NCBI RefSeq assembly: GCF_000315625.1
Contig: NW_005434586.1
Coordinates: 57,109-121,108 of the forward strand
Length of the DNA stretch: 64,000 bases
Origin: Guillardia theta CCMP2712
Lineage: Eukaryota; Protista; Cryptophyta
Direction: 5' to 3'
Part shown: piece after piece, positions 19,609 through 54,191 of the stretch
How the letters are laid out: every line of letters begins with the position of its first letter
How positions within the stretch are numbered: position 1 is the first letter of the stretch
Position numbers and translations under genes: made by a program
Notes under the pieces: model-generated
Database searches by the model: none
Told to the model about the DNA's origin: nothing
What the model saw: only the letters and a program-made list of their open reading frames with translations

Positions 19609-19613
19609 AAATG

Positions 19614-19659
<46 letters not shown>

Positions 19660-26420: not shown

Positions 26421-26537
26421 ATTGATTGACAGCTTAAAAAAACCAAAAAAAAACAGCACAGACTTTGATAGATAGAGAGGAGAGAGAGTGCTACTTTGAG
26501 GGCCGTGTGGACGGCGCCACTTCATAGTAGATCTGCC

Positions 26538-28616
26538 ATGCAGGAGGGGGCGCTGACAGGTCGGAGGACTCCGAGGCTGGAAGACTCTCTAGAGGAAGAG
26601 GCAGAAACCGTCTACTACAACGTAAAAGCAAGCATACGACAAATCGAGACATGGAAGGACGTGAAGAGAGGTTACATGTAAGCCGTTTGTCCTGTTGGCG
26701 AAGCTTGTTGTTGTCCTCCCTCTCACCTTGCTGCAGGTCACTGTCATGGTACATTTGCTTCGTTCTCATCTTCGTAGGAATCTTAGCGATGCAGATGGAC
26801 ATAGGACGAGCTTACTTGGTTGACTACTCCCTTAGAGAAGTGTTGGTTGGACAGTCTGATAAGTTGGACGGAATTCGCTCCATAAATCAATTGTGGGATT
26901 ACATCATTGGGACAGATCCAGTGACAGACACAGGCCTCGTGGGCAAGACGTTTGAGGAGAACTGGTATAATGGACAAGCGTACGATCCTAACGAGCTTGG
27001 GTTCGTTCTCGAGTACAACAAGATAGTTGGGGGAGTCCTCTTGGTACAACAGCGAGGAGTTATCAGCAACTGCACCAAGGAGAGCGTTTACTCTATCTTG
27101 TACCCAAACTGCTACGACTGGGCTGTCGACAAGTCTCCTTTCGGACCTCTGGGTGCTGATGGGTTGCCGTCGTACAATTATTCGTCGCAATGGGGCGGGC
27201 ATGGAGTGTTCTTGAAACTCTCAGACGGTCGGGATGTGAACGTGGGCATTGTCAACGATCTCAAGGCAAACCTCTGGATAGACAAGCAGACTCGCGCGCT
27301 GCACGTGAAGTTCGCGGTGTACAACGGAAACCTCGAACTCTTCACCTACATGGACTTGAAGTTTACTTTCGGTCAAGGCGGTGGCCTCAAACGTCCTCAC
27401 AGCCTCAAGATTCAATCAGTCCCTCTTGAGCTTTATACTCGTCCTATTGACTTGTTCAGGCTTACACTGGAGATGGTGTTCATCGCCATCGTAGGCTTCC
27501 AGTTTGGGACAGAGGTGAACGAACTCTTGGAATGTATCGCGAAAGGAAGACCGTTGGAATATTTCTTGGACTTCTGGAATATCTTGGACATTTTGAATAT
27601 CGCCCTCTTCTCGGTGGGTATTGTGTGGAGAGTTCAGTATGTCTCTCTCGTCAGTGCAAACCCTTTAGAAGTTCCTACTGATGAATACAAGCTGTTAATT
27701 GAAGAATCGGCACAGCTACAGGGAACTCAGGTATCAATCAATTCGTTCAACATCTTGATATGTATCTTCCGACTTTTCAAGTAAGTTTGAGTATAGTTGA
27801 GAATCCGTTCCTCTGACATGTTTTTCTCCTTTCAGATTTTATGAGTTCCAGGACAGGTTGAACATCCTGACCCGAACTTTTGGGCATGCATGGACGGATT
27901 TGTATCATTTCCTAATCATGTTTCTGGTGATTTTCTTTGGATATTCCTTTCTCAGCCACGTTATCTGGGGTCCACACCTTTACGCGTACAACACCTTCGG
28001 GCTGGCGATTCAGACCCAATGGGAGATGATCTTGGGCAACTATGACTATCAGGCCTTGAAGAAGATCGCTCCAGATTTCGCCGCCATCTTGTTCTGGTCC
28101 TTTATCTTCTTCGTTGCGATCGTCTGCCTCAATGTCTTGCTTGCTATCTTGATTGAGGCTTTTGGAACTGCTTCGGAGCCGGAAGATCAGGACATCCCCC
28201 CCAACAGCGTTGGCGAGCAGCTCACTGTAGCAGCATATCGGCTCCTGTCCAACGGACCCGGAGATCCATCTGAGAAGGACCTAACTGACGAGATGCTCGC
28301 CAGAGTTCTTAGACATTTCGCTTCAGATGGTATCAAGATCGTCACGGAGAGTGACATTGCCGCTCGTTTGGACTATGGCATGCAGGGTCAACTCCAAAGA
28401 AAGCTACCCATCCTGAAAGTTGCAGACAGCGCGATGGTCGAACGCGAGAAGGGGATCGCTGACTCAGTGAATTTGGAAATGAATCGAAAGAAGCAGGAAC
28501 TTCTACGACGATCTACAGCTTTGCTGCACGAGAATACCAGGCTCAAGGAGAGGATCGTGCAGCTTGAGCAGCTGTCAAAACCTACACAAGATGTTTTGGA
28601 TGGGAGGAAGATATAA
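26538..28616 (+). CDS. PKD2: Polycystin-2 (PKD2/TRPP)-like cation channel, ~650 aa, 3 exons
   Basis: S1, then a TOP domain (YNKIVGGVLLVQQRG, LKANLWIDKQTRALHVKFAVYNGN), YFLDFWNILDI, S4 ICIFRLFK, S5 FLIMFLVIFFGYS, pore QWEMILGNYD, S6 LNVLLAILIEAF and a C-terminal coiled coil. Introns at ~26678-26736 and ~27781-27835. Confidence 0.92.
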
Positions 28617-29233
28617 TCGTTCAAAGAGATGAACTGAATGACATGTAAAGTAAGCCTTCACTGGTTGGAAGTTTCTGCCCTTTCCTGTGCTCTCTTGAGC
28701 CTGCAAAAGTTTTGCAGCATCAACATTTATGAAATATTCATCTCAAAGTGCACCTGACGTTGTCATGATGTTCTTGTGTCATATGTCGCTTCATGCATTC
28801 ATTCATGGCGTTGTTCTGCAATCTGGCAAAATCTGTTTCAAAACTCGAACTCTGGAGAAGTCAACAAGCTCACCGGCAGTTGAAGATGACAAAGAGTCCG
28901 TTGGCTTTTTCACATTGAGCAAACTCATTAATCTCTTTCTTGCATGCAGCTACAGCATCTGATTTCACAATGTCTGCAATTCTTTTCTCTTCCTGCAAAC
29001 AGTTCAATGAAACGACTCAACTCATATCTACGAATCTTCACAGGGAAAGTTTTTCTAAGGCGAGATTCCCTGTTGAAACTTAGACCTTAGAGATTATCAA
29101 GCCCCCGCGACAACACCAACCTGTTGGAGTCATCCTTCCTTGCTTCATTTAGAGACATCGCCCTACGAACAAAGAGGTTATGCAACGAAAATGTTGAAAC
29201 CCCTGCTCCCTTGAAATCCCTCCCTCAAACTCC

Positions 29234-29408
29234 TCTCTGTCTCTGTCTCTGTCTTTGTCTCTATCTCTCGCTGTCTCTCTGTCACTGTCTCTGTCTGTCT
29301 CTCTCTCGCTCTCTGTCTGTCTGTCTCTCTCTCCCTCCCTCCCTCCCTCCCTCCCTCCCTCCCTCCCCTCCCTCCCTCCCTCCCTCCCTCCCTCCCTCCC
29401 TCTCTCCA
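29234..29408 (+). repeat. (CTCTGT)n/(CCCT)n microsatellite between PKD2 and the giant gene
   Basis: Visible tandems. Confidence 0.9.
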
Positions 29409-29769
29409 TGCATCGCTGTCCCTCTCTCCCCATCTCCATGTCTCTCCCTGTTTGTCTACTACGCACGGCTGTCAGCATTTCAGCCTTATGCCTGAGTTAG
29501 TCACATGCCAGGCCCCGGCCGAAGCCGAACGCCGGGGCCTGGCGACTCAAATTTTACTCACAGAAGTCACAGTAGCCTGGTAAGAATTAGTTATCAGCGC
29601 TACAGTAGGCTTCTCGGATTTAGAATGAGGGTACTGGTGGTGGTTATGCTAGTACGGGTGGTCTTTACCCGATGTCGTCTGTCCAATTCTCCTGGGGTGG
29701 CTCATCAGTTCCACTACAGTGGGGTAGGTCCTGTGCCGGTGCCTGTTGAGCTCTCAAGGTCGGGGGAGA

Positions 29770-32700
29770 ATGGCAGCGGCAGGAGGTCCCTGCCGCGCTC
29801 ACAAGCGATGGTGCATGCTGACGTTGCAACAATCCTTCATGCACAAGATGCTTTTGGTTGGCATCTTCTTCTTAGACTCTTTAACAAGCACGGCCAAAAA
29901 TCAAGTTCTAGCAGATGTTTTCCATGTAAATAGATCTCGGACAAGCTTGCAAATTTGTAAAATGCGGCCAAGGAGTTACGATCCTAATCTCGATATAACA
30001 CAATTTGGAGTGTCACAATTCTCATGGTATCCTAAGGGTCAGCCTCTCCTTGGCGCTACTGCGGGATGGTTGATAGGTAAGGATTCACCAACCTTGAGTC
30101 TCTATGTAAAAGGACAGCAACCACATGTTGCTCTTGTTAATGGCAATCTCGAAGTGCAAACACAAGTTGACATAACTATGAACGTCTCTCTGTACAATAA
30201 TCCTGGTTGCGCATATCTTAATGGAACCACATCAATACGAACAGCCAACGGCGTCGCTCTTTTCACAGACCTCATGATCAGTCGTAGTGGATATCCGTAT
30301 CAATTGAAATTCGAAGCAGGCGCCCGTGGAGGGCCTGTTGTCTTCATCACACCTTATTTCAGGGTCCGTGTAGGACAAATATTCTTGCCTTATGATCCCA
30401 TCTGGAATCCCATCGGACATTCTATCTCAACCTACCCAAAATTTTCAATTCCAAGTTGTAGTAAGAGTTGCTCTCAGTCTTGCAGCTGCAGAATACAGAA
30501 CATTTCTATAAGGGAGCAAGTGGTTGCTGGAACGCCAGTAAAGTCCGAGGAAAACTCGAGCCTACATGACTGCAGTGGATTTCAATTCCCTACGATGTGG
30601 GTTCGCACTTACAATTTCTCCAACACTTCCCTGGGAGTTGAGTGCGATGGTTGGGTTGACAAGTTGGACTGGAGCTACAATTTTACTTTGATTGCTGGTC
30701 CAGTCCCTCAATGTGTGAAGCGTGATCCTCTCGCTGAAATTGATGTGTGCTTGCAAGGTAGGCGTGATCGTTGTGTATTTGTTTGTCTTCATTCTGACCT
30801 TGTCACAGGCTTCAACGGGACGCTCACTCAAGTACCAGTCAATGGCAGGGCAACCTTCACAGACTTAGTCATCTGGGTTGCCGGCAAATTGACACTCACT
30901 TTTGGCACTCTTGGCATGAACAGCACAACCTTTGATATCCATGTAGTGCCAGCTGAAGCGAAATCCATCTTGATTTTGAAGCAGCCTCCGAATGTTAGCA
31001 ATGTTGGAATATTTTTCACACTATCTCAAGCTCCTATTGTAAATTTGGTAGATTCATTCAACAATTCCGTGACAAGTTCAACTTGGAAAGTTTACGTCTA
31101 TTCCTATCAGAACCAATCGAATATAACGTTTCCAAATGTCGTAAAGCCTTTCGCTTTCAACCATGAAGGTGTTGCAAAGTTTACAGATATGACCTTACAA
31201 ACTTCAGGATTAGTCGTACTGAAGTTTTATGCCAGCAACGAAACCAATGCAACTCTTCCATACAGGATTGGTCCATCAATATCATCTCCGATTTTTCTAT
31301 ATCCAGGGTACGTGCATCAGATAAGAGTTGTATCGAGCACAACTATCAACCTACCTGTGCCAAAGGTATGGAATCCTACCAGGGTTTTTGCGGCGCAAGT
31401 TCTTGCACCACAGCCAGCAATCACTTTCCTAGATAGATTCGGAAATTTAGTTTCCTTCGGGGGTATAAATGTCACCTTGACCATGACAGTGGCAACTGGT
31501 ACTGGCGTGCTCGTAGGGAATAACCAAGCACCATCCAAGCAAGGTTTTGCAGTTTTTACAGATTTGCTCATCACCTCAAAAGGAATTTATTACCTTTATT
31601 TCAGTGCCAAAACAATGTTTGTGAATCAGAGTTTGACAGTGAGTGCTGGAGTATTGCGCAGACTGCTATGGAATACTCAACCATCCTCTATTCCCGCCAC
31701 TCGCAAGTGCACTTACCAGTGCGGTATCAAGTGTGATTCTTTGACAACTCACTTTCAGACCTTCAATCCGCAAATTATAGTGAATTTCACAGATGAATAT
31801 CTGAATCCTGTTACTGCTGCAGGTGTATGGTTCATGCTTGACCTTTTTCCAAATTACAGATCTGGTTCTCTTGCGAACAGTCCAGTGGATATTTCTACAG
31901 TCAAGCTCACATGCACGAATTGCTTCAATGCAAATTTGTTGATACAGGCACAAGAAAACGATCGAGGTCTTGTTTTCACTGACCTGGCAATTACCCTGCC
32001 TTGTGAGGGTCCTTCCTCTGTTACGGGTCTGGCTCTTCGAATGACTGCCGTGGATTTGACTAAGTGCTCAAATATCGGCGGGATCACCCCTATCTATGAC
32101 TGTAGCAATCCTGTGTCTCATGTATATCAGGATGTGCTTGTACAGAATGTATCTTTGACATTCAATGTGTATAATATCAGCAATTTGAATTTATTGCCAC
32201 ATGGATTGCAATTCGTCAGCGGACAGTAAGTATTTTGATTTTGGTTACAGTCGGTGTGAATGATTTTGATTTTTGCAGGCCTCTAAATTTTCCCGTGGTT
32301 TCAGGTGCCCCAGGCGTGGAAATGAATTACCAGGCTGCAAATACCCTTAAACTTGCAGAAACTGGTGTTTTTGCTGTGGATCTAATATTATATCGCCATG
32401 TGCTAGGGACTGATCCATATGACATTGTCAAGTGTTTCGGAAATGGGGGGAAAGCCATCTGTGGAAATGTGATCTTGACGTTTTCTGGGAACTACTCATA
32501 TCAGTTTCGTTTCCCCTCTTGTATTGACTTGACGCAATGCCCTCAATATCCAATTTACTCATCTACATCCAATTTTACTGTGATTCCCGATAATGCGAAA
32601 TCTGTTTTATCATTGTCTTGTACTCAATGCCAGCAGCCTGTTTCATTCTCGATTCACACTTCCATTCCAGTTCCCATCAAGGTCCAGTTACAAGATCAAT

Positions 32701-35700
32701 TTGGAAATGCACTACCGGGAAAAGCAATCTTAATGTCGCTGGCAGAAGGCACCATACTCGCTCCTTCATACAGCAGCACAAAAGGATTGTTTGTTCTATC
32801 AAAGCAATCTGGAGTCCCTTCTTCTCTTGATGGAATTCTCCTCGAAAGTGCCAATGGTTTGATCACAACGTTTGCAACAATATTCTTCTCAGCTGCGTTC
32901 TTGCAAGCACAGTTGAACTTTTCCGTTCCAGCTGCGCCAGAAATCAAAACCACACTCTCAAACACCTTTCAAGTGTATCCAGGCAACACGACAAGCATTC
33001 AAGTCAGCTTCCAACCCCTTGCTTGCTATGCAGGACAAGAAGTGGAGCTGCAAGTAGGTTTGCTTGATGCCTACAACTATGTTCGCTATAATGACACTGG
33101 AAGTTTGATGGGACTGATTGCAAATAATAGCATTGATGCTTCTTTGTACACCAATAGTACCACAAAACAAGGTTTTGCGACATTCACTTTCAGTCTTACT
33201 GAGGTAACCTCTGACCAGAGGTTGAGAATGTTTCTTCTCTCAGATATCAGAATTAGTGTGATTGCTCAAAGAATTCAAGTTGTGAATGGATTCCCAGCCA
33301 AGCTTGTGTTCATTGATTCAGTAAGAAACCAAACTTCAATGGAAAGCATTTATCCCTCTGTGAAAATCGGCTTTTTGGATGACTTTGGCAATCGATACAT
33401 AAGTGACACATGCTCCTTTAAATCTAGTAGAAAAATTTGTGTTGACACGAGCGGCCTGTTTGACACAGCATGTCCTTCATCTACACAATCATCATGTTGC
33501 ATTACCTTTCAGAACACATCAACTCATGCTTTTTGTCAAAATCATACAAATGGAAATGTGTTTGACCTTGAAGTTACAGTGTGGAATTTGATTTCTGGTA
33601 TCGAATTGAAGAACTTTTCGGAACATCCACTCCTCTTCGGAACAACAAATCAATCCTGGTATCCAAGTGTGACACAAGTTACCTTTCCTGGTATTTCAAT
33701 CGGATTGGTGTTACCTCCTGGTCTTGGTTATAAGTTACGAGCTTCGCTGAGCGGTCTCAACTTAATTGAATATTCTAATTCTTTTTTGCTGCTGCCTGGT
33801 GCGCCGCATTCTGCTCGTTTCTTAGACATCTCTAATTATTTCGTTGCTGGTCAACCGATTCCATTTGTTGTGCAAGTTACTGACTTGTATGGAAATCTTG
33901 TCAAAAATCCCATCAAACTCAATGTGAGTTTGCTGCGTTATGAAGGATACTCAAATGCTAGTGACGAACTTGTTCGTAAGGAGCCACTTGAAGTTGTCAA
34001 TGGACAAATCATAAGTTCGATCTTTTCTGTATACCACATAGGCTGTATCACGATCTCTTGCAATACAAGCTTTATTTTTGAAGCTGCAGGCGATGAGCTC
34101 TATAATGTCAGCAATCCTTTCTCTGTAATACCCAGCTATCCGACAAAATTGATATCTTTCTCGCGTTATCAAGATTATACATGGCTGTTTAATGCAAGTG
34201 GACCTGATATCTTTTTGTACGCTGAGGATAGATACAAGAATCAGGTGTGGATGAACGACACTCTGTACGCCTTTTTCACTGTGCCAGAAGCTTGCAACTC
34301 TAGCTATCAACATTATGTCGTGTCTTGCGTGTCTCCAGACGAGGTTGGATTTTGCAAGTTTCCCTTCAATTCTCGAGATGGAACATGGTTGGCAACAATG
34401 CAAAACAGAAATACCAGCCTTACATGTCTCCGTTTCTTCGTACAGTCATATCCAAATCTATCAACGTATTACGGTCCTGTTTCCATCTTGGACAATTACA
34501 CATTAAATCTGACTCAACAGCCAGAAGTTCGGTATGCAGGCCAATTATTCTCCAAGCCACCTGAAGTACAGATTTGCCCAGCAACTCCTTTGGATCAGAA
34601 CTGCTTGGTGTATGCTAAAGTCTCGGTATCTATCACGTATACTGCAGGAGCATGCAGTCTTTACCCTTCGAATACTGATCGCTCATGTCTACTTGGTGGC
34701 CCATCAGTGACCTGGTCAACTCAAGATGGCATAGCGGTCTTTTCTGAGATTTTCATCCAGCAGGCTGGAACCCTCTACTTGACATTTCAAGTGCAGTTTG
34801 AATCGATTCAATCCGGGGTCCTCACAGTTTCCAATGCAAAAGTTGCTAGAATCGAAGTAAGTAATATCTCGAGTTCACAATCGACATGCGCAGGGTCGAT
34901 GAATTATGCAAGGGCCATTCTGTATGACGAATTTGGAAACCTAGCCTCAAGTAGTTCAATCAATGTGACATTGTTTGCGTCAATCTTGAATCAATCTCAG
35001 CTAGTAGGCATGACACAATCACAGAGCGGCGTCGCAGAAATCAGTTTTGTGTTGAAGGAGGCAGGTGAATATAACATCACGGTCTCGCTGGAAGAAGATC
35101 CAAATGTTGCAAATACTCAGTCTCTTCGAGTGGTGCCGTCAAATGTCAGCAGAATGGTAGTGAAGACAGCCAGCACAACGGTCCCTGCAGGTGATTCAAT
35201 CATATTTTCTGTAGTTGCGTACGATTCTTATGATAATGAGATTGGATGTTGTAATAGCTTGTGTCAATCATGCAAGAATGACACTAATTACCTCAATTTT
35301 TACTTTTTCTTAATGAGCGGTACTCTTCTGGTCGAGGATCTTCAGTTCGAGAGTGCAGATAATCTTGGTTCTACCCAGTGCAATTTTTCTACAAATAGTT
35401 TCATTGTACCAAGTCCTACCACAACAGGCAATGATTATTCTATCAAAGTGTGCTACTACATGATAGCAGACTGTAACGCTTCAGAGGCAAGAAATGCATT
35501 TTCAAATCCATTTACTGTGGCCCCCTCAGCAAAACAGCAATTTGTCCTTCTATCGAAGACACCAGTAAACGTGAGTATTGTTGCGGGTGAAACTCTCCTG
35601 TTTTTGGCGTTTCGCCTGCGAGATGTGTATAACAACCTTGTTCTCTCCAATGCTCATGCACATATTTGGGTATATACATCTTTGTCGAATAGTAGTTGCG

Positions 35701-38700
35701 GACAGAAATATTTCAAGATATTGCCTTGTCCTTTCGAAACCATTGAGCTTTGTCAAAGCAAACAGGATCAGCTGAACTTCATTCAAAATTGTTCATTTTC
35801 GTATGACTGTATTGCATCCCCGTCAGGTGTATCAATGCGGAATGGCAGCCTAATATTTGGTATGGAGTTTTTGAGCACAAGAATGGACTACACCGTTGAA
35901 GTGTGCCCCACTGCAAATGTTAAACCTTGCAGCAGTGCTGCATCAACCTGGTGCTCGATCACACCTGGCCGTCAGGGTCCATTCCAAGTGAGTCCTTCAT
36001 CTGCTGCTCGACTGCAACTGGAAAAGTGTTCTGTGAATACTTCTCATCCTCTGATAGCTGGTGAATCAATGGATTGCATCTTCTCTTTCCAAGACAAGTA
36101 TGGAAATCCAACGCTCTTACAAAACACGAGCAAGATTGCTCAAGTTTATTTCTCGTATCAAAATGGAACAGCAATCGTTCTCTCCAATCATTTGTTAGCA
36201 ATATATGGGGAGGTGGTTCAATATTCTACAATCTCGAATAACACCAATTCAGAATCGAGCCAGTGGCTCATTGTTCCCCAGATTCACGATGTTTCAAGTG
36301 TTCTGAACGTACAATACTTGAAAGTGATTATTCCAAAGAATGGATCAAATTTTTATTCACCTCTGACAAACGTCACGACCAGTGGGAAGATTACTTTCTT
36401 TGTTTCAAATTTTCCACCTGTCAAATCAAATGATTTTAGCATCATTCCTGGAAACATTTCTTCCATCATTTTCCTTTCGATTCCCAAGTTTGCCGTTGCT
36501 GGGAAGCTTCTGACTGAAGATAAGTTCGTTATAGTCTTTCGTGATCAATTCGACAACGTAGTTACGCATTTGAGTTCGCTGTGCGCTTTGAAGACGTTGC
36601 AGCTTTACAGCGATGGGAGTGTGATGTCTCCGGCATACTCATACGCGCAGGCCCAGCTCGGGGAGGTGAGCTTCTCCAATATTAGTCTCAGCACGACAGC
36701 ATATCAGAATGTGACCATCTACGTCAATGTCAGTGTACTTGACACTGGTCAGGCTTTCTCTCGTCTGTTGGGACAGTACTTCATCCACAGCGCTGCTCCA
36801 ACCAACTTGACGTTCCTCACTCAACCAGGCTCAAGTGTCGGCTTCGAACCTTTCCGAGCAAGCATTGACATCAGTGTGAAAGATGCGTTTGGGAACAACT
36901 TCTCTTGCCCTGTCACGCTGCGGATGAGGTTGCACCAAGAGAATGTGGGGCAATCTGCTTCGATCGTCGGCTCTCTTTATTCTAATTACAGCGTTGTTAC
37001 CGGCATCGCCGAGTTCTCAAACCTGAGTGTTCATCTGAATACATCCTATGGAACATTTCGCACCGTTGCTTATTTTTGCAAGTCTTCGATTCAGTTTTCC
37101 AGCGCATGCCCAAGCGGTTTCATTGACCCGAAGCCAGGTTGTGAGTCAGATGGTTCTGAGATTGCATCGAGTAGCGACTGTCAACAAGCTGAATCTTTCA
37201 GAACATTCGTCTGCACTTTCAGTCAAGATTTCGAAGTCAGATCTGTCGTTTCGCTCAGACTGTACATGACAGAACCCGTCGAGAGATTCGGTTACTTTCT
37301 CGCAAATCCAAGTTTTAAGACATATAGAACATTGCAGAACACATCTGTCGGGATTTTAAAAGTGTATGACTATCAAGACAACTTGTTGAACATCTCGATA
37401 GGACCTTACGATATCTTCATTCCTTCAAATCCCTCAATCCTGTCCAAACCCCCTGGTTATCCGTTCGCAGGCAAAGAGGGGTATGTGTACTTCACGGACG
37501 TATTCTTTGTGTTGCCTGGCAACAATTTGAGGCTTGTTTTCCGTCATGTGCCCAGCGGCTTACAGAACTCATCTCAGTTATTCAATGTGGAAAGTCTAGA
37601 CGTGGTTCATTTGAACCTGTCATGGCCATCTGAAAAGGTGAACTTTTCATGGATCTCTGACAATGTGAAGGAAGGGCTGACGATTCCAGCATTCAAAGCC
37701 GGTGAAGCCTTCAGTCATCAGCCAAGTGTTTCCATCTTGAACTTCTCCTTCCAACTTCGCTTGAATTTCCTGAATTCAACCACATCAATGCTGACTCATA
37801 TCCCAAGTCGAATTGCGAGCAAGAACGTTTTGTTTGGAACCACCACAGTGCCGGCAACTAACGGTATTTCACACTTCACTGATTTGCGTGTCGATCTTGC
37901 GACAAGGAGCATAAGGTGCACAGACTTGTGCCGACAGGAATATTACGCGATTGAATTTTATGTACCACAATCAAACGGATTTATTTACGGTTTACCTGAT
38001 AAGATTGTTGTCAAGTTTCATGTATTCCCAGGGAATATTTCAAATATTTCCATCACTCAACAACCCGGATCTACAGCATCTGGATTCCTCCTAGCACAAC
38101 AACCAATCTTGGAATTGACAGACAAGTACAGTAACTTGATTGAAAGTTCACCTGATGCATCGCAACCATACCGAATCATTGCAAGTCTAAATGCGCAGAC
38201 AGCAAATCTGACAGGTCACAAAATTATATCACTACAGAATGCCTCCATCAATTTTACCGATCTTGGCATGGTAGGGCCTTCTTTGGACACTTACAAGATA
38301 AAATTTACTGCAATCGAAACCGGAATCTATGCATATTCCAACGAGTTTGCAGTCAGAACGCCAACGAAGCTTGTGATTGTCACCCAGCCGAACAACCCAG
38401 CAGTATGGAATGAGGTCTTCTCGTCGACCCCTCAAGTTGGTATCTATGACGAGAAGGACTTCCTTGTGACTGCCAACTACTCCATACGTGTGAGCCTGGT
38501 GTTGGCCAGCCAAATTGAATCTCAAAGTTATCAGTTGGTAGCAGGAATAGATGGGAGTAATGTCTCTTATACAGGTACGACAGGAATAGCGACCTTTGCC
38601 AATCTTTTGATCAAATCGGCTGCTCTTATCGGAAACAGGTATGTGTTACTGTTCACCGTCTCAGCTCCGGGTGTGCAGTCGGTATATTCCATTCCGTTCG

Positions 38701-41700: not shown

Positions 41701-44700
41701 CGGCAAACAAGACCCTGAGCAACTATGTCTGTGGAGGTACGATTTGCCAGGACAATGGCTATGCTACTCCCTTCTGTTATAGCACGTATTCACAAACGGA
41801 ATGCATCACAAATTGTATGAACTCAGAGAGCTGCAGATCTGTCACTTATCTCCTGGACCGCACCTCCATGAACTGTTTGATATCCAATGCTCCTTGTTAT
41901 GCTCCACCAAAAACCTCTAGACCCACGGTTGTCTACTTGTTCGGAAAACTGCATGGTCAGACGCAGGTCAAAACCCAGCAGGGAGGAGCGTTCTTCAATG
42001 CCACGTACTTCACCATGGTGGGGAGGTACAATGTTTCCATCTGCACCTCACCAATCGCGAGCGTGTGCACTTCCCTTGTCATCACGGTCAGTCCGAACGA
42101 AGCTGAGGGGTATAGGTTGATTGTTAGTGATCCATATAGCGTGAGTCCCTTCGATGGGATACCATTCAAACCCAGGGATGTTCTTCAGGATGAATACTTC
42201 TCCATTGCCGTTCGGGTAACTGACGCATATGACAACACCATCACCTCGAATTTTACGGTCTTGGCGTACTCCAATGCTTCGGGTACCAAGAACTCTACCT
42301 TCAGACCTGTCAATGGAACCTACATGGTAGATACTTCGAACGGCATCGCCAATTTCTCTCAGATATTTTTCGATCTGGATACTGAAATGGTGGTTCAGTT
42401 GAAATTTGAGCTGTTAAACTTTTCAATTACAAATCTTTCGCAACCTTTCGTTGTGGGTCCACCAGTCAAATCAATTGCAGTTCTTAGCTACAATCCAATT
42501 TCAATCAACTTTCCCGGAAATGAGCCCTTACTCGTACAACCTTTGATTGGCTTTTATTTTGCCAACAAAAGCTTGGCAAAGATATCCAAGTCTAGTGTTG
42601 AAGCTTACTTGCCAAGCACTCTTTCTGTTCCCATCAAGCTCAACGGTACAACCAAGCTTGATTCGTCTGGCGGTTTTGCCCAATACACTGATTTGACCAT
42701 TCAATACATCAGCGGAGCATATTATCTCAATTTGTTTTTCAAACTTGTAAATGCTCGACAGACATCGATCATCACCAATCTGACGAACACGATGTATGTC
42801 GATTTTACAGCAAGACGTTTACACGCTTCTCTCATGTCTGCCAGCCGTGTGGTTGCTGGGCAACCATTCCGAGTGTCAGTATCACTGTCATCGAACGTGC
42901 AGACACTTTCATCTCTCTACACAACCCACCGTGTTGTCAAAGGTATTTTCACCAATGTGACGTCATGCCCACAGTTTGCAGCGCTGTGCATAATTAATTC
43001 GGGAGTGTTCCCGAGGAGCACTGGTGAGCAGCCCTTTGCCAGCTCTGTTGCTTATTTCGATTCGTTGACCTTATTGACAAGCGGGAACTTCTCGTTGACT
43101 TTCTGCTCCGGCGCTGGTTGCGGCATGTCAGTTTCAACTGATTTAAGCAGCAACCCCATACCCATCATTGTCGATGCCGGTCCTATGGTGTCTCTCAGAG
43201 TCTCCCAGGAAGTGTCTGTTGCGACGGCTGGAGTGCCTTTCACAAACATAATTGTAGCATACGACACCTACGGGAATGTCGTTCAGAACGCTTCATTCCT
43301 GGTACAAGTTTCAGTCAAAAGCAACGATTGTACATTGAATTCTGGTCTGTCAAACAACCCACTCTGTGGTAAGCTGTTGCGGCCAGACAAGAAAACGGAG
43401 ATATATGCATCAATTGTGGTGGAGATGCAGAAAGGCGTAGCATATTTCAGCTGCCTGGCGGTGGACAAAGCGTTCGACAATTACATTCTCACCTTCAAGC
43501 AAATGATCACACAGTCTTCCTACGGGCTGCAAGTGGATGGCCAGCCTTTCAATGTCTTGGCGGGTCCGCCAGCTGCGATCTCAATCTTTCAAACTCCCTC
43601 GCCCGACGGGAGGATCATAGCCGGTGCGGAGCTGAATGGACCCTCCACTCCCATCGTGTACCTCATCGACAACTTTGGAAACTTATACAAAAACACCACG
43701 GGGGTCACGGTCACCATGTCTGCTCAATCACCTCCTCCCAATTCAACGTCGATCAGTGTTGGGGGCGTGGTCATTGGCAAGGTCTCCAACGGCTATTTCG
43801 CGTTTGCCGGAGCCTATATTACAGCTTCTGGCCCGGCGATTCTCCTTTCATTCAGTGCTACAGTGCCCGGAGGGCTGAGTTTCACAGCGACCAGTGTGGT
43901 AGCGTTTCCGGTCTATGGCAAGCCAATCGTCAATGCGTTGCCAATCTTAGTGGCACCCACGACCATGTATCAAGGAGAGGTGATCAAGCCCTTCCCAGCA
44001 GTCCGTTTGATAGACATGTATGGGAACACAGCGGTCGGCAAGTGTTTTGCGGTGCAGATACTCCTCCATTGCTTGGACCCCGCTGCTTGTAACTGTTCGA
44101 GCATGTCTGGTCAGACCATATCCTCTACTTGCACTGGTATCGTTCAGTTTACTGATGTCTACACCTTCGCTGCCACTGGTCAGTACGTGCTTCAGTTCAA
44201 GCTCCTAAGCGCTCCAGGCTCGTTTGACGTCCCTGTTGAGAATGACTGCATGAATCAGTCCCAAACCCTGTCCAATCAGTCGAACATTACCCTGCAACCA
44301 ACTGCCACGAATTTCTATGTCAAGCCAGGACCGAATGAATCGTGCTATGGAATAACCAATGCGACTTTGTGCAACCAGAATTGTGTCTGGGTCGCTTCGC
44401 GATGCATGGGATTTCGAAGCGCAAATGCGGGTGAGTTCCTGCTGGACCAACCCTCAGTTGAGTTCCGCGACAGTCAGAACAACCTGGTCTCAGGGATCGA
44501 GGATTATGTCGTGCGAGTTTCAGTGACTCCAGGCGCGTTTGGTCTCACCGGCACAAGCTTGGAGTCAATCCTCACGGGAAATCTGAGTGTGAAGGTGGTC
44601 AACGGCACGGCTAACTTCACAGACCTTAAGATCCTTGTCCCTGTGCAAGGGATGAGATTGAAATTTACGGTCCTCTCTTGCTGCGGAAAAGTCACTCCAC

Positions 44701-47700
44701 TGACTGGACAGAGCGTGCTGTCTCCCTCGTTTCAAGTCTACGGTCCTATCACCTTCATCCGAACTCTCGTTCAACCCTCAGACTCATTCGCTGGTGTGAC
44801 CATGAACAGCAGCGTCGTGGCACAGCTCATCGACTCTGACCGAAACCCGGTGCATTTTACGGGAGTTGGGATGTCTTTCTTGTTGAGGGGGGGCATTGGA
44901 GCTCAATGTCCTTCAGATTCCAAGACCTTGTACATCCCAACCAACGACGTTGAACTCCTCTGGACACAATACTCTTCGCTGCAAATCACACAGAGTCTTC
45001 TTCCAGTCCTTGTCATGACAAGAGCATCTTTCATACAATTGCTGCAGGTGGTGTTACAGCTATTCGTGCAGAGCTCAGTGTACGATGCGCTCTTCAGTCA
45101 GTTTGATCTCAACGGAGATGGATACATGAACTACTATGAGTTCACGACAGCCTCGTACTACTGCGTTTGCAGGACAGGTTATGTTGGAGGACAGTTCGAG
45201 ATCATATCCAAGGGGAATCCATTCACACCGGGAGAAGTCAGCGTGACAAACATCTCTTACTGTAGGCCGCAACAATTCTGCACGAACCCATTCCAATACC
45301 TGTGTGACCAGGGTGCAGCAGCGACGCGCAGGTTTGTTGAAAGAGTTAATCGGTTCAATTTCTCGAGTGCCGATCGCGTCGGAACCACCAACGCTGTGAA
45401 GATCAATGATGGCATCGCTGTTTTCAATAAACTTACCGTGTTTGAAGCCGGGGTCGGCTTGTTCCTTCAATTCTCGTTTCGTCAGGTGGTTGGGAATTCA
45501 AATTTCTTCAACTCGTATCCGAGTCTTTCTTCTTCGAATTACAAGCTCTTTTTTACCACGATTGCTCCGAACGCCTTGAAAGCTGGAACCACGTTTGATG
45601 TGTCTGCGGTGATCATCGATGAGTTTCAGAACTTTGTGCCCACTGTCAATGCTCAAGCTGTGCTCCAACACAGCAACGTTTCACTCTTTTCCAATGATTG
45701 TAATTTATCCTCACAAATTCGTTCTTGCGACAGTTGTCCTGATACGATTCAAGATTATTGCCCTGGACCGCGTTGTCCATTCCGATGTGACTTCTCGAAC
45801 GTAAAGAGAATAAACTCAAGTCATGGCATATACAAAGAATCACTGCAGGCCTGTTCGTATTACTGTAAACAAGGCTGTACATTTATGTGTGGTAACATGC
45901 GTTCAAACCTTACTAGGGGAATAGTCACTTTTACAGACCTTCAAATCAAGAGGACGGGAATGCATGAATTTCTTGCAGTCTTGCAAAACAGTGTTCAACT
46001 TTCAATCAACAGGAGCTCTGAACAATTCGCGAATCAGTTGGCTTATGGTCAGAAGTTGGTGATGGCTCAGTTGATGATGTCGCAGAACCAATACTCTACG
46101 CTGGTTTTCCATGTGATCAACTCTGATCCCTTCTATGTAGTCAACGATTTTGGGCCGACGTTGGCATATCAGAGGTCGGGGACGGGAGCGGGCAAACCCT
46201 TCGACCCGCCTCCGAGGTGCCTGGTGACAGACTTTTACGGCAACGTGGCGAGCGACTCTAAGATGAGGATCGGGCTTCTGATCCGCGACGGCGATCGCGA
46301 TCAGTACGACGCCGCTCAAGCCACGCAAAAGTACTACACTGCCCCCCTCGAAAAGGTTCCCAACACCTCCCAGTACGTGGGGTGGCCTCCCAACACTCCA
46401 GGGGCGTATCCGATCGGTCTCTATGTGGACGAAGTCTTCTCGACCTCGCCGTTTGAAAATCTGAGCAGGACTGACGATGAGCTGGGTTGCCCTTCACAAG
46501 GTGGACCCCTGGTGGGTTGTCCTGGCACGTCGACCTCTCCTTACTCCATCGCCATGAGAGACACGGTGACCAACTACAAGTGGTGCCCGTCCTCGCAGGA
46601 GAAACGATACTGCAGGACCTGCTTGACTGCTCAGAGGTACTTCCAGTCCTACAACGCAACCCACTGGACGCAGCAGTACACCTATGTCAACCCGGTCTCA
46701 CAGCAAGTTGAACGAGGAGCCTTCGACTGCCCGGGCCGGGAGCATTGCTCCGGAGGCAGTTCGAACTGCTTGTGCCTTGTGCCCCTGCACGAAGCTACTG
46801 GGAATGTAAGCTTTGATGTCTGCTCAGCATGCCAGACAAGGGGTCTCCCAATGGGCCTTCCCGTGGCTTGGACCGAGAGCGGGGTAGCCACGTTTAACAA
46901 CCTGTTTTGCAGTGTACCCAAGAGGGGTTACAGGTTCCAGTGCATCATCCCACCGGGAGATCAGGGCAGCAACGTGATCCAGCCCCTGCTGTACAGCGTC
47001 TCCTGGGATTGGAAGGACGTGAGGACCCCAAGGATCAGCTTCATCAACGACGGCACCTGGTTGTACCTCGGCACTTTCACACCTCTGCTGTGGAAGGACC
47101 CGAGCGGCAACGAACATCCCGAAGCAGCTCTCTGCGAGAGTCTCTGCGTGAATCAGACGCTGGCTCCCGACGCTCCGAGCTATCCCACCACCAGGTGCCC
47201 GAGGTCATGCTACAAGTACGGGTACCCCTATGCCAGAAACCCAACCTTCGCGTACGCTCGGCCTGAGTCTCCAGGGCTAAGCGAAGTGTTTCCTGTGACT
47301 GCTGGAGACGTAGCGATGCTGCTGATTCTGAAGCCCTACGCGAACTCCGTTGCTGACCAGATCGACCGATCTCTGTCTTCTACCACCAGCTCCTTTGCTC
47401 CTGATTCTATCCCAGAGTTTCAGATGGCAGACAAGTTTGGCAATCCAAACAGGACGAGTCAAGGCCTCGCACAGATTTCGCTGAGGTCAAGTCCTAGCAA
47501 TGTGGGCGCGGAGTTGTCTGGAATTCCCAGCAGCAGTTTGTCGAATGGTGTGGCCAGGTTTCCGTTGATAAGCATCAATTGCCCTGGTAAAAACTTTCAA
47601 CTTGAAATGAGTTACTTCCCCAACAGCTCAACCGTGGGCAGCTCTGTCACAGGAGTATCCTCCTTGTTTGACGTCTTGCCTTCGCCGCCACGTCTGACTT

Positions 47701-50700
47701 CAGTGCGATTCACCGAGACGTGGGATGCTTTGTACATCGTCATCGATCGATACACCACTCAACCCCTCTTCTCCTCCATTGGCTCTTGTAATCAAATTCT
47801 GCAATCTGTCCTGTCGTTTAATGTTTCTACGAGGACGTATAAGAATAATTCGATCTGCTCAACGCAAACCAGTGCAACGGCGACGTGCAACAACTCAATG
47901 CTGGGAGAGGGCGGGTACGAGTACTGCGATTGGGTGGATAGCAGGACGATACAGGTACAGCTCGGGCGGAATGCAGAGCTGACGCTGAGCGATCTTGTGT
48001 TCGTGAAAGGACCATGGGGGGGGCTGGCGGTGGACAGCATGGTCAACTTGGGAGCATACACCTTGAACTCGCATAGCTGGTTTGTCAACGAAAGCGTTGG
48101 GTTCCTGCCTCTCCGAAGCGATCGCCTGAGCGCAGTGAAGTGGGCCTGCATCAAAGATGCTAAGACGGGGGCTTGTCCGCCGGCCTCGTTCGGTGAGCAC
48201 ATCAGCAAAATCAAGCTGTTCGAACAGAACGGACAGAAGTTCCTGGTGGTCTTGAGATACTGTACTGGTGCAGACATGTGCAAATCATATCAGTCATCCG
48301 ACTCGATGGTAATTTATGAGATGACTTCAGATGCTACCAACACGTATTCCTTCGTGTTGATCCAAAGACAAGTCTTCTCACTCTCTGGGCCTGTTGATGT
48401 CGAATGCTTCTCACTGCCCTACGACATAGCTGCTCCCAAACGATTCTGTGCAGTCGCGCAATACTATGACGGTTTGACATTCTCAAAGTCTGCACAGATT
48501 TTTAGCCAAAGTACAGGAAGCTTTGCCTCAAGCACCTTCAGCTCCTTTGCCACCATCCCCTGTTACAAAACGATTTCAGTGAAATTCGAAAATTATGCAC
48601 AAAGCTCATTTTTACTCGTAACTGGCGAACAAGAAAGTTATCTTACACAATGGATTCCGGGACAGTTTGTGATCGATCCCAAGAACCCCGGGTCTCAAGT
48701 CTGGCAGGATGGACTTTTTCAGCTTCAAGTCACGATACCTTCCACGTCAGCTAGTCAGGCTCGCTTTTTCTTTTCGGGGAACCAATTCTACATCGGAATA
48801 TCGAATAGTCATGGATCCAAAACCTGCTCAACGTTGGACTGTCCGTACCAGTACTCCAAGAGTGCATTCCTGGACATTTTCCTGGTTGGATACAAGGCGA
48901 AACTCATTTCCTTGGGTACACTTTTCCAGCCATGCAACACAGGCAATCCTAGCACTTACTCAACAATATCAATCGATGGCATTTTCGAAAACAGTTCGTA
49001 CGTACAGGATGGAAACGTCATTCAAATACAGGGTGAAATCATGGTCTTCTCAAGTCAAAAAGAAGGCCAATACTGTGATCCACAAGGCAATCCATACACT
49101 TTAAACAAACTGAACAATATCACCTTCATCGTGAAACGAGCTTCAAGTTCTCCGCCTGGTCATTCGCCGGATGACATCGTGTACTTTCTTCCTGGGGGTG
49201 TCTACACTTCCGTGGAGCCTCAGCCTTACCTGCGCTTGCCTGGGACTGGCATCAGGGACTTCGTTCACTTCAGCGACTCTGGGGTTGACTACATCATGTG
49301 CGCCAACTACTACAGCGGGTGCAACGTGACTGGGTACGACCAAGACTCGCTGATATTCTCAGTAGACTTTGAGGCGAGGAGGTATGAGATACACCAGAGG
49401 GTCGGGACCCAAGGAGGCCTTGAGCTTATGCTCTTCAATAGAACCTTGCTCGATCTGAACGGCAAGGCTACCACCAAGCTCTACATCACTGTCGCGAATC
49501 ATAAATCCAATAGCGGGAATTCAGTCCAATCAGAACTGTTCGAATGGACAAACGTCAGTGCTGAGGTGCAGCCGTCGTACAAACCGTTCGTGGGGCTTGC
49601 TGTGAAATCGTCATGGTACACGACCTTCGCGATGTCATGGCTCTTGATACCTATCAGCACGAGTGGAAATGATCGCTCTATTCTGTTGCAGGTACCTGCG
49701 CGTCTTTGACATCTCAATCTTGACACGTTATGTTTGTGGCAGATTTCGAATGCGACCCTCACTAGCAGCAATGCCTCCATCAACGCTTATCAGTTCGAGA
49801 ACTACAAGCCTATCCCGGTCCCGCTCATATCCGGCCCGAAGGTAAGATGGGGGAGCCAACAAGATCGATTTAACACGTCGGCAGGTGATCGGGATCTGCG
49901 ACTCTCTTTACCTCGATGGGACCATGTCGACTGGAAGTGCCGGACGGGGCTGGAAGGACATTCTATGGAATGTGTCGTACCTGAACGCGTCCGTGAACGA
50001 CACACTGTGGAACAACTTGTCGTTTGCCGAGTATGCCAACTCATACAGCGGTGGGATGATACTCAACGTCACGCCAGCTCTAGATATGTCCTCGTCTTTC
50101 TGGGAGACTTTCTTCCCGCCTGGGGTTTACCAAGTCAACCTGTCACTGACAAACTGGGTTGGGCAGCAGAGCATTTCAACATTTGAGTTTGAAAAGACCA
50201 ACATCTCCACCCCTACTCTCTCCTTGCAAACATCCGCTAAAACCTTCGATATCTGGGAGTATTTTTCAGCCAGTGTGACATACTCGTTCAAATTCTGCGA
50301 GAATTCCAGTCTGGTTTACAGCAATTACAACTTTAGCTGGAGCTTGTACGATGAATCTAGCAAGCTTGAAGTGCAGTTACCATCGGAGTACATAGCTGGC
50401 TCGCAGGTGATGGTAGGGAAATACTTCTTCCTGCCAAACACTCAGTACAAGTTGGAAGCTGCTGTTGAGATTGAAGGGTTTCATGCCAGCACCTTCGTTA
50501 CCTTGCAGACTGGTGTGGATCGAGCTAACGCAGTGCTGGTGGGAGGGGACAAGACGGTGCCGCTCCAGGCGAATGCCTCTTGTGCTTCCAGCACGCCCAT
50601 CTTGCTGGATGCTTCCAAGTCTACAAACTTGGCTTTCCAACCTTTGAGCGCATACGCAAAGTCGGGCCTAAAATTCACGTGGGAGTGTAGATACCATCCT

Positions 50701-53700
50701 AGCACACAACCAACACAAGTCAGCAAATGCGATACCTCCTCGTACAACGTCTTGGGGTCCTCCTTTGAGTTTCTACCGGACAAGCTTCGATCCATCAACG
50801 CCACATACACGGTCAACGTCAAGGTGGTGCCCTTGAACTATGTATGCCTGACACAAGTTACGGCACCAGTAGGCGGATGCTTGCCAGATGAAACAGACAT
50901 CAAAGCGTCCACAGCTTACACCGCTATCCAAGTAGTGGTTTACAGGGAGCTTGTATCGCTCCCGTCTGTCAACCTTGCCTTGATGTCAAACTCAAAGACG
51001 GTGGCTGGAAACCTTCCTCAAATGTTGACTCCCATTTCGATCAACATGTTGGATCCAAACCAACAGGTTGTGTTCAATGCCACCGTCGGCATTACATGCA
51101 GTGGAAAGTGCGACGAGGCAGTGAACTCAGTACAGACGATGACTTGGAACATGTTGCGAGGAGGCTCGTCAGGGTGTCAAACCGAGAGCGATTGGTGCAA
51201 CCCAGCCAACGTGCAGGGGGCAAAGGAGGTGGTCGCTCCCAACACGCTCTTGGAGCCTTTGACTTCTTGCCAATGCCAGACGACTTGTTCTCTCACCACT
51301 CATCAGCTTTGCTCCTGCTTTGCATACCTCGTCATCAAGCCCTGTGTGCTCAAAGGCTCTCAGATCTTCACCATGGTGTTCGACGTGATCGACAGTGGAG
51401 GCAACGTCGTCAGTGCAAGCCTGAACTTCCAGGCGTACCAACAGCCGAGTGGGGGTGAATTGATCGTGACTCCCACCGCCGGCAAGTCGCTCGAGACGGA
51501 ATTCACCATTGAGACCAGCGGCTGGGCCGGGAGTTGCACATCAATGTTCTTCTACTTCTCCTACAGCTTTCAGAACTGCAGCAACTCTTTCTGTGTAGTC
51601 CCGATCTCCTCGGCATCTTCTCAGAGGGTAGTCAAAACAGTCTTCCCTTCAGGAAACTTGACCGTCACTGTTCACGCTCAGTGCGGGACTCTGCCGTCTT
51701 GTACCTCGTCATCGTTGTCTGCTTCCGTGCAGGTGGAGGCGGCGACGTCGGCCGCTCAAGCTCAATTCATCGAAAAATTCCTTGGAAGCAGTCTCAACAT
51801 GGACAACGTGCAATCGAACTTGGTCGTGCTGTCTGCAATTGCTTCGAGTCCCCAAAGTCAGCCTCACTTGAACGCATGCCTCAACATACTACAGAACTCA
51901 TGGATGCGATCCAATTCTATCTTGCTCTCTCCACAGATCTCTACCATCCTCGGCCTCTTCACATCCAACGGCGCGCAACTCGATGCGAACGGGTTGTCCA
52001 TCACCTCGAACCTCGTGAACAACATGACCTCAGCCCTGGTCCTCTCCTCTGCCGATAGCTCCTTCTCCACCTTCATCTCCAGTCAAGGTCGCTCCCTCGC
52101 GCTTCTTTTCGGAGTCATTCTCCAGGCGAACCAGAAGACATCCGTGCGGTTTCTTCACCCCGCGTACATGAGCTTGCAGCTGAGCAGGAGAGCCGGGGCT
52201 CTCAGCACCCAGCAGCAGCGACTGCTGACGAACCTCAACGGGTTGGTCGTGCAGAGCTCCATCCTCAGCGTTGCCGATCTCTTCCCTGGTTCACCTCCTG
52301 GCAACGTGTCCATCCCGGGATACTTCTACGCGGAGGTCTGGGTGCTCCAGGGGCTGGATATGCAGACGGGTGACTTTGCAGCTTCTCTTGACAGCAGGGC
52401 TGCCTTCCAACCGTGTATCACTGCGCGCGATGTCGCCACCTGCTGCCTGTCCAGTCAGCAATGCTGTGTCGATAGCCAGTGCCAGTACCCTTCGAGTGTA
52501 GAGGTTGCCTTCGGCTTTACCATAGTCCAGCAGAACATGTTTCCTTCGCTCTCGTCGGACGTCTACGAGGTGGAGCTGGGCATGTTCCCCGGCGACCCCT
52601 TCCAGCTCCTCGACTCTCGAGCCATCCTCAACGGGACGGCAGTCGTTCATGTCACCAAGAGGCCAGCAGTCGCAGTGGAGGACGTGTCTTACATCATTCG
52701 ATTGCCCATGAGTGAGGCTCTGGCAGTCTCGATGCTCGAGAGCAAGGAGTTTGCGCCTGCGTGCTTGCGGTGGAATCCCTCGACCCTCAGCTGGTCGACC
52801 TTCGGGGTGACGCAGAGCAGGGGCTTCACTGCGACCAAGAGGATGTGCGCCAACACCTCGAGCGCGGTCACGTGCTCGTACTTCATCGAGTGCTCCTCCT
52901 CCTACACAGGGTACTTCACCATCGTGAAGAGCAAGCTGGACTGCTTCGGGGTCCCCCTGGGCTCGGCAGTCTTGGACGCCTGCGGGGTCTGTAACGGCGA
53001 CAACTCAACGTGCTCGGGTTGCAACGGCATCCCGAACATGTACGATGCGGGAGTGAAGCTGGACAAGGCTTGCTCGGGGCATGGGCAGTGCCAGGGGTCG
53101 CCGCAGTGTGTCTGCTGCTCGGACAACAAGTACGAGATCAGCTACACCAGCCCCGACGGCCAGGTCTTGACCACCTGCCCCTGGTTCGGGGTGATGTGCA
53201 ACCAGTACTGCAGCCCCGGGCCACGAGCGGCTCGTCCTCGCTCGGAGCGACTCAGACGATAGACTGCAGCTCTCATGGGAGGTGCGAGACTGTGAACGGA
53301 ACCCTGACCTGCGCCTGCGACTTGGGATGGGAAAACTCGGACGGGAAGTTCTGTAACAAGGAGGTTGTGGTAGTGCAAAGCTTGAGCCGATCGTTGCAGC
53401 TCTTCTTCTATGCTGGTCTTCCAATCATCTGCTGCTTCCTGCTCATGTTCACGTTCCTGTCGTGGAGGCACGTGTCAAGGAAGCATCGGAACATCTTGAA
53501 GGTGAGCAAGGAGGTGAACAGGTCGCTGTTGGAGTTGGAAACAAGCAGCCAGGTAGCAGGCGAGGTTCAAGAGCTGAGCGAAGAGAGCTCGACGACTCAT
53601 TCGCATCCTGAGGATCACAATGTGCCAGAGGTTGGCAAGGATGAAGGCTCCAGGGCCATTCAGCTTGTAGCTGGGAAGGAGCTGGAGATTCCTTCGGTAA

Positions 53701-54191
53701 CCGCCTTCTTGACTACGTCAAAGTTCGAGGCGATCTCGGACACCTGCCCCTCAGACCCGGTGGTGATGAAGACGTTCCAACGGCTGGAGAGGCTCAAGCA
53801 AAAGATCAGCTCCGACAAGTCCTTCCGGAATGTTGCCGAGACTTTTCACGATCACGTCGACATGAACAAACTCGCAAAGGCGGGTGAACGCATGCCGACG
53901 TCGCTCAAGAAGGCCAAGGTGGAAGAAGATGCCCAAGTTGAAGTGCCAGGAGGCTTCATGCAGCAGCGCCAGCGCAAGATGATGGCAATAAGCCAAGGGA
54001 GAGCAGCCTCTGCACTGCCAAGCTTCATGGAGCGGAAGAAAGAGATGATCAGGAGGAAGAAGAGCCATGAGGTGGTCTTGTCGTCAGGCTCGAACAGAAA
54101 GAAGGACGCAGGCACAGAGCAAGACAAGTCAACTTCAACTTCCTCTGAAGGAAAATCATCCAGCAACGAGGGCGCGATCGCTTCAGTGTGA
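29770..54191 (+). CDS. Giant (~8,000 aa) type I membrane protein: many Ig-like repeats, PAN-like and EF-hand inserts, EAR/EPTP-like repeats, REJ domain, GPS-like motif, Cys-rich/EGF repeats, one TM, charged cytoplasmic tail
   Basis: ORFs 29746-32229, 32235-49709, 49734-~49840, 49885-53262 and 53010-54191 are joined by short introns (32226-32278, 49692-49742, 49841-49884, one near 53215-53270). Recurrent motifs QP..., D.FGN and G.A.F.DL.I...G.Y.L.F. REJ-type LDASKS and PSGGELIVTPTAG..LETEFTI..SGW. TM LFFYAGLPIICCFLLMFTFLSW. Confidence 0.85.

Follow-up and report, generated by a model that had tools for sequence, protein, structure and literature searches.

The most familiar examples of REJ and GAIN domains are those of animal polycystin-1, sperm REJ receptors and adhesion G protein-coupled receptors (GPCRs). 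ADGRV1 (VLGR1), one such receptor, has a long Calx-beta array, an EPTP/EAR-type region and a GAIN domain, followed by seven transmembrane helices (7TM). Here we describe a locus of the cryptophyte Guillardia theta CCMP2712, where a gene for a REJ- and GAIN-bearing protein of ~8,050 amino acids (hereafter, the giant protein) lies close to a gene for a PKD2-type channel. The window, i.e. the whole stretch of 64,000 nt of nuclear DNA that was analysed, comes from contig NW_005434586.1 (positions 57,109 to 121,108 of the forward strand), and all the positions given below refer to it. A first-pass annotation of this DNA had proposed that the two genes form a tandem and encode a receptor–channel pair. 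We consider it likely that these are instead parts of a group of three independent genes, that the giant protein is a cryptophyte-wide adhesion/tether receptor or surface anchor, and that its closeness to PKD2 is lineage-specific or due to chance.

The PKD2 partners that are understood contribute a channel-like transmembrane (TM) domain to a 3:1 tetramer; polycystin-1 (PC1) is one of them, and MST3 of Chlamydomonas, completed by SIP, is the other (PMC11015965). MST3 is a giant extracellular, hydroxyproline-rich glycoprotein with a PKD2-like TM domain, found in a flagellate alga that has PKD2 (PMC11015965, PMC7265326). The sea urchin protein suREJ1 carries REJ on a single-TM protein with EGF-type modules and no channel domain (PMC2120838; PMC10855541). 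It also has C-type lectin modules, and its cDNA is 5,596 bp long (PMC2120838). As suREJ1 has one TM segment (PMC10855541), a PC1-type ectodomain without the channel half has a precedent. For Guillardia, a search of the literature with polycystin or REJ found nothing specific.

The giant protein and its cryptophyte family

From its N-terminus, the giant protein has a putative signal peptide and an array of 36 or more Ig-like repeats; the EPTP-type region and REJ come next, then a GAIN domain whose GPS is degenerate, then Cys-rich/EGF modules, and finally one TM helix and a tail (Table 1).

Table 1. Features of the PKD2–CMC1–giant gene locus (window positions)
Feature	Position	Strand	Basis and remarks
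PKD2/TRPP-like channel gene	26651..28616	+	636 aa, two exons; Pfam, PDB matches, splice sites, hydropathy
CMC1-like gene, 99-aa twin Cx9C protein	CDS 28658..29158	-	spliced RNA contigs, raw RNA reads, translation, Pfam
CT-rich microsatellite	29228..29415	.	in the divergent CMC1/giant upstream region; sequence; passed over as a repeat during read alignment
Giant gene, transcript start to stop	29778..54191	+	spliced transcript contigs; gene model; ortholog alignment
Signal-peptide-like N-terminus, MHKMLLVGIFFLDSLTSTA	29839..29895	+	read from sequence
Ig-like (E-set, Big_1-like) array, at least 36 divergent repeats of ~100 aa with Cys-rich inserts	30079..47660	+	iterated HMM, Pfam, AF2
EPTP/EAR-type repeat region ahead of REJ	47661..49841	+	EPTP scores of homologous ortholog regions
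REJ module, series of beta-sandwich domains	50332..51804	+	Pfam; AF2
GAIN domain, six-helix subdomain A and beta-sandwich subdomain B	51748..52938	+	AF2 fold match
Cys-rich juxtamembrane stretch	52939..53354	+	contains the frame break at ~53218-53220; Hanusia mRNA reads through
Single transmembrane helix	53394..53465	+	hydropathy: only segment >=1.8 in 8,042 aa
Cytoplasmic tail, ~240 aa	53466..54188	+	alignment of Guillardia, Hanusia, Teleaulax and Cryptomonas-type tails

The membrane-proximal part had earlier been described as REJ plus a GPS-like motif. REJ was recovered by Pfam (PF02010; 6.7e-20 with 71.5 bits against a cutoff of 25, and 1e-12), and the description of the GPS had to be corrected: a whole GAIN domain is present and its cleavage triad is lost. 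We modelled the window region 50332-53163 with AlphaFold2 (AF2) from 25 relatives found by exhaustive search (mean pLDDT 71.5). The model has beta-sandwiches at residues 1-470, a six-helix bundle at 473-646 and a further beta-sandwich at 657-869. The top four fold matches (VIA) are all GAIN domains, from CELSR1 (Z 17.2), BAI3 (16.9), GPR110 (16.1) and latrophilin-1 (15.2), with 260-292 residues aligned, and the rows that follow score about Z 10. Because the four best matches are all GAIN, we take the GPS-like motif (52759-52926) to be the end of a true GAIN domain. In sequence searches, Pfam at E<5 reported neither GPS nor GAIN in the giant protein, a PDB sequence search with the REJ-GPS region returned nothing useful, and ESM Atlas gave a weak GPS lead (0.77).

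At the GPS of G. theta the triad reads Y-T/G as against H-L/S or H-L/T (the slash marks the cleavage point). In the alignment of orthologs, H-L/S is present in the Teleaulax-type and several environmental sequences, Y-T/G in Guillardia and S-T/G in Hanusia; self-cleavage was probably lost in the Guillardia/Hanusia lineage.

Between the GPS strand and the TM helix, there are ~140-160 aa of Cys-rich/EGF modules, comprising an ADAMTS-like CGVCNGDNSTC motif (52981-53022) and EGF-like modules at 53071-53118 and 53259-53354. The single TM helix ascribed earlier to this protein was borne out. An 11-TM region was not found, there being one hydrophobic helix in 8,042 aa; Pfam did not find PLAT or PKD_channel in the giant protein, nor did any Pfam scan find Lectin_C. 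As basic residues (WRHVSRKHR) come directly after the helix, the topology is expected to be type I. The tail motif IPSVTAFLTTSKFE...TFQRLERLK (53688-53807) and the C-terminal valine are conserved across the cryptophyte orthologs.

The Ig-like array was delineated with an iterated hidden Markov model (HMM), which recovered 36 repeat copies over residues 89-5912; it was seeded with a motif-anchored alignment, a single-sequence seed having failed to recover the repeats. Pfam gave weak Big_1 and Ig_GEX2_N matches to these repeats and found no PKD domains among them. One repeat, modelled with AF2 (pLDDT 85), folds as a generic E-set Ig sandwich, with fold matches that include intimin, invasin, macroglobulin and filamin (Z 8-9) as well as velvet and Runt (Z 10-11); no single family stands out. 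The main exon encodes 138 N-glycosylation sequons. An EF-hand-like loop, DLNGDGYMNYYEF, lies within the extracellular array at 45105-45143 (Pfam EF-hand_1, 18.8 bits, sub-threshold).

In the region ahead of REJ, neither Pfam (run on the ~690 aa of the G. theta EPTP region) nor ESM Atlas found a match; the homologous regions of three orthologs pass the Pfam EPTP threshold (28.5-49.8 bits). This region probably forms a beta-propeller, judging from these homologues. In two orthologs, an FG-GAP beta-propeller (Pfam 8e-22) is inserted in the EPTP region, at 14135-15820 of the Teleaulax-type contig L001 and at ~5810-7735 of the environmental contig L010; the G. theta protein is without it.

An exhaustive search returned 377 matches, mostly through the repeated CGVC motif. 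The true orthologs among them are from Hanusia (P0003, 64-65% identity), Teleaulax amphioxeia (P0157), Cryptomonas curvata (P0010) and environmental contigs. The environmental orthologs have a single open reading frame (ORF) of 5,897-9,256 aa, with the REJ and tail exons coming after it. In tblastn, residues 51-8030 of the G. theta protein are collinear with Teleaulax-type contigs at 25-37% identity. On these sequence comparisons the giant protein is a member of a conserved, cryptophyte-wide family. The earlier description of a PKD1-type ectodomain detached from the channel domains and hugely extended thus agrees with what we found, namely REJ and GAIN/GPS without a channel module, below an Ig-like array.

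The giant protein can be compared with several known systems. With polycystin-1 it shares REJ followed by GAIN/GPS near the membrane, a large ectodomain with Ig-like repeats and a PKD2-type channel in the same genome. It differs in having no 11-TM region, PLAT or channel-like S1-S6, in its repeats, which are not Pfam PKD domains, in the loss of the GPS triad and in the distance of the GPS from the membrane, ~150 aa. Like ADGRV1, it has a long array of beta-sandwich repeats, an EPTP/EAR-type region and a GAIN domain above the membrane, and its match to the GAIN fold of such receptors is strong (Z 15-17). Unlike ADGRV1 and other adhesion GPCRs, it has no 7TM, GAIN being followed by Cys-rich/EGF modules and one helix; its repeats are Ig-like and not Calx-beta, and REJ precedes GAIN. 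The resemblance to suREJ1 is in the REJ-bearing, EGF-containing single-pass design; however, suREJ1 is far smaller, lacks both the Ig array and the EPTP region, and has a tail to which that of the cryptophyte protein is unrelated. The comparison with MST3, from which the proposed tethering of a huge ectodomain to a channel derives, is that of two giant extracellular proteins from flagellate algae with PKD2. The giant protein differs from MST3 in that it has one helix in N-out orientation, opposite to that of S1, no poly-proline helices, and a REJ-GAIN base of a kind that is not described for MST3 in the paper on it (PMC11015965).

The gene model is founded on transcript contigs from two RNA runs, 25,307 and 18,353 nt long, which start at 29778 and 29789. 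The coding sequence (CDS) begins with the ATG at 29815, ends with the stop codon 54189-54191 and encodes ~8,042-8,059 aa. Introns 30758-30808 and 32226-32278 are absent from the spliced contigs and therefore RNA-supported. Introns 49692-49742, which takes out an in-frame stop, and 49842-49884 are required for an open frame, and over these third and fourth junctions the spliced protein aligns unbroken to the intron-less ORF of an ortholog. The introns of the locus are 43-55 nt long with GT..AG ends. The frame breaks once, at ~53218-53220, in or directly after a CCCCGGG run; 3' of the break it is open for ~320 codons and conserved in Hanusia. A 1-nt assembly indel is likelier here than an intron because the Hanusia mRNA reads through, so the break is likely to be such an indel or else a strain polymorphism, and we read the protein across it with X. 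A 50-nt intron at 53164-53213, considered for the last junction, was dropped, since the Hanusia mRNA retains the conserved 'CPWFGVMCN.YCSP'.

A second possible indel difference was seen at 30260 in the first exon, where one contig of a DNA run is one base short relative to the assembly. An out-of-frame ATG at 29808, 7 nt before the start codon, opens an overlapping upstream ORF of 42 codons. The presumed 3' untranslated region (UTR) is ~1.1 kb long, as judged from the 25.3-kb transcript contig; at 54531-54956 it includes long low-complexity repeats that would code for Thr/Ser, as well as Pro-rich frames.

The sole GenBank model, XP_005824995.1 (GUITHDRAFT_154792; 359,948-bp scaffold), is identical to the last 666 aa of the giant protein; the other ~7,400 codons are apparently unannotated or split in the public annotation. 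The corrected gene model is thus a practical gain in itself.

The PKD2-type channel gene and its relation to the giant gene

The region 26651-28616 is a complete, stand-alone PKD2-type channel gene, as the first reading of the sequence had it. It starts with the ATG at 26651, and exon 1 (26651-27780) is joined to exon 2 (27836-28616) by removal of a 55-nt intron (27781-27835), whose ends, GTAAGT..CAG, were read from the sequence; the splice joins the ORFs 26651-27784 and 27858-28616. In Pfam, the protein matches Polycystin_dom (PF20519, 2.6e-12), the TOP domain between S1 and S2, and PKD_channel (PF08016, 2.8e-15 to 1.8e-16), the S5–pore–S6 module, in a six-TM layout. A sequence search of PDB with the two exons found PKD2L1/PKD2 structures that match from S1 to S6 (5e-20 and 2e-14), the match at 5e-20 spanning S1 through S4. 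The hydropathy peaks correspond to S1, S2, S3, S5 and S6, and S4 was placed by alignment. The acidic selectivity filter of human PKD2 is L-G-D. The filter motif of the G. theta channel, 'LGNYD' (28029-28049; context ILGNYDY), has Asn where Asp stands in the human one, and Asp two residues on, as read from the letters. A C-terminal heptad-rich helix is encoded at 28488-28574. The ortholog in Hanusia phi is 92% identical and a Goniomonas relative 34%. Protein searches by word matching, made with PKD2 exon 1 and the REJ region as queries, gave relatives from Hanusia and Goniomonas only, and such searches are unsuited to counting paralogues. The channel would form homotetramers like other PKD2 channels.

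The PKD2 and giant genes had been called a tandem. They are indeed on the same (+) strand and close, with 1.16 kb from the PKD2 stop to the giant transcript start, but they are not immediate neighbours, because a minus-strand CMC1-like gene sits between them. We determined the transcript structure of PKD2, CMC1 and the 5' end of the giant gene by aligning RNA to 26500-32400 (5,901 letters). The CMC1-like gene has four introns (28700-28752, 28823-28873, 28992-29040 and 29069-29119) and was placed on the minus strand because the four RNA joints read CT..AC. Raw RNA reads cover it at 28470-29257, and Pfam recognized Cmc1 (PF08583) in one of its exons alone (24.7 bits, cutoff 22). A CT-rich microsatellite lies between the CDS start of the CMC1-like gene (29158) and the opposing transcript start of the giant gene (29778-29789). 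The upstream region of the giant gene is therefore common to it and the CMC1-like gene, not to it and PKD2. The CMC1-like gene would be a mitochondrial housekeeping gene, transcribed from the opposite strand and independent of both its neighbours.

The CDS ends of PKD2 and CMC1 are ~40 nt apart. The CMC1 mRNA reaches at least to 28029; since one transcript contig joins spliced CMC1 exons to 28029-28699, its 3' UTR (at least 630 nt) runs antisense across PKD2 exon 2, overlapping it from the pore filter to the stop codon. This overlap could be natural antisense regulation of PKD2. The remaining genes of the window, for an M14 carboxypeptidase, LepA and a zf-CW protein, are unrelated. An assembly gap of 100 N (18705-18804) lies within the minus-strand LepA-like gene (18199-19974).

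Co-expression of the two genes had been suggested as one check of their pairing. Runs X1 and X3 are RNA, because their contigs are spliced. In their assemblies the giant mRNA has depths of 270 and 294, whereas PKD2 has depth 0 over its 5' half and 6.6 at 27135-28021, where the contig retains the PKD2 intron. The signal at 28029-28699 in these runs belongs to the CMC1 mRNA and not to PKD2. A Hanusia PKD2 fragment too ends inside the retained intron ('FRLFK|YVK'). The RNA levels of the two genes in X1 and X3 are thus strongly discordant, contig depth being a crude measure of expression. In a third set, the raw-read RNA run X10 (2026), nearly all the 101 reads fall on CMC1 and almost none on the giant gene. 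As the giant mRNA is nearly absent from X10 and CMC1 is present in all three runs, giant expression seems to be condition- or stage-dependent.

Conserved neighbourhood in other cryptophytes had been proposed as a further check, and none was seen at the one Teleaulax-type ortholog with readable flanks. We read 3.3 kb upstream of this collinear ortholog along ENA scaffold_368 (L008), and tblastn found no homology to PKD2 or CMC1 there (E>1). Neither gene was found by tblastn in 2-3.4 kb downstream of the ortholog, on other contigs (L001, L002). In the metagenome that contains a giant ortholog, the same search readily picks up a PKD2 ortholog, which lies on a 1.7-kb contig of its own without context; an exact-protein look-up of one ORF from that contig gave no match. 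Between Guillardia and Hanusia, PKD2 is 92% identical and the C-terminal part of the giant protein 64%, which indicates that constraint on the two genes differs strongly.

Explanations for the locus

Three independent genes are, in our judgement, the likely explanation of the above results. The giant protein would be a type I surface glycoprotein of very large size that most likely works on its own, as an adhesion/tether receptor or as an anchor of the surface coat. Its 36-50 Ig-like domains would form a stalk of perhaps 150-200 nm that carries the distal end away from the cell, and the EPTP-type region together with REJ would form a ligand- or matrix-binding base. The GAIN domain, above the Cys-rich/EGF spacers, is probably self-cleaving in the Teleaulax-type orthologs (H-L/S) and would have lost cleavage in Guillardia and Hanusia. 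One helix would span the membrane, and the conserved tail would dock to an intracellular partner. PKD2 would be a gene scarcely expressed in the sampled cultures. The exact role of the giant protein (adhesion, coat, mechanosensing or gamete recognition) is deduced from its anatomy.

Several points weigh against this explanation. Contig depths are a poor guide to expression, and co-regulation of the giant gene and PKD2 in another state is possible. The synteny comparison covers one other lineage with flanks of ~3 kb. A PKD2 gene would be found within two genes of a REJ giant by chance in ~1-3% of cases, which is nominally unusual; this estimate is post hoc and takes unverified paralogue counts and ~25,000 genes. 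Finally, the EPTP region and the signal peptide of the giant protein are elements that we infer from its sequence.

A mainly structural giant protein, i.e. a component of a fibrous coat or of the periplast surface or an anchor of flagellar hairs, with GAIN and REJ serving only as spacers, is unlikely. The very high abundance of its mRNA in two transcriptomes, the long, rod-like Ig array with its many N-glycosylation sequons, the loss of the GPS cleavage triad in Guillardia and Hanusia, and the fast divergence of the ectodomain are all consistent with such a role. However, the conservation of the tail and of the GAIN fold across the cryptophyte lineages suggests signalling or regulated docking, and the near-zero expression in the third RNA data set is odd for a constitutive coat protein.

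We regard it as improbable that the giant REJ-GAIN protein and PKD2 constitute a 'split polycystin' complex, in which the ectodomain gates or anchors the channel, e.g. to sense mechanical stimuli at the flagellum or periplast. Animal REJ/GAIN proteins (PC1, suREJ3) do partner PKD2, and PKD2 of Chlamydomonas anchors the giant MST3/MST1 mastigoneme (PMC7265326, PMC11015965). Moreover, the two genes lie 1.16 kb apart on the same strand, an adjacency nominally unlikely by chance, and the heptad-rich C-terminal helix of PKD2 could mediate binding. Against this stand the CMC1 gene between them, with which, and not with PKD2, the giant gene has its upstream region in common, the discordant RNA levels and the absence of synteny at the Teleaulax-type ortholog. 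The giant protein lacks a channel-like TM domain, and with a single type I helix it cannot fill the place of PC1 or MST3:SIP in a PKD2 heterotetramer. We also considered its helix as a SIP-like donor of S1, and rejected this because the PKD2 channel here has its own S1 and the type I helix is the wrong way round to mimic it (PMC11015965). The receptor–channel pair put forward at the outset thus finds no support in these results beyond the proximity of the genes.

A mechanosensory complex of PKD2 and the giant protein made by a new contact, for example of the GAIN/EGF base with the TOP domain or of the tail with the coiled coil, is very unlikely. If it were true, it would be a third coupling of a huge ectodomain to a polycystin channel, besides PC1–PC2 and MST3:SIP–PKD2, and the neighbourhood would be its trace in the Guillardia lineage. 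The locus would matter more if the pairing were real, and the present evidence is against it.

With the three genes taken as independent, the locus introduces a cryptophyte-wide family of single-pass proteins of 8,000-9,000 residues, which combine an Ig-like stalk, an EPTP-type region, REJ and GAIN with a conserved new tail. Within this family, some cryptophyte lineages have retained the GPS cleavage site and others have lost it, which offers a ready-made comparison of cleavable with non-cleavable forms for the study of GAIN function. The family lends weight to the idea of the REJ-GAIN "sensing half" as an old and portable ectodomain module, which works without the channel half.

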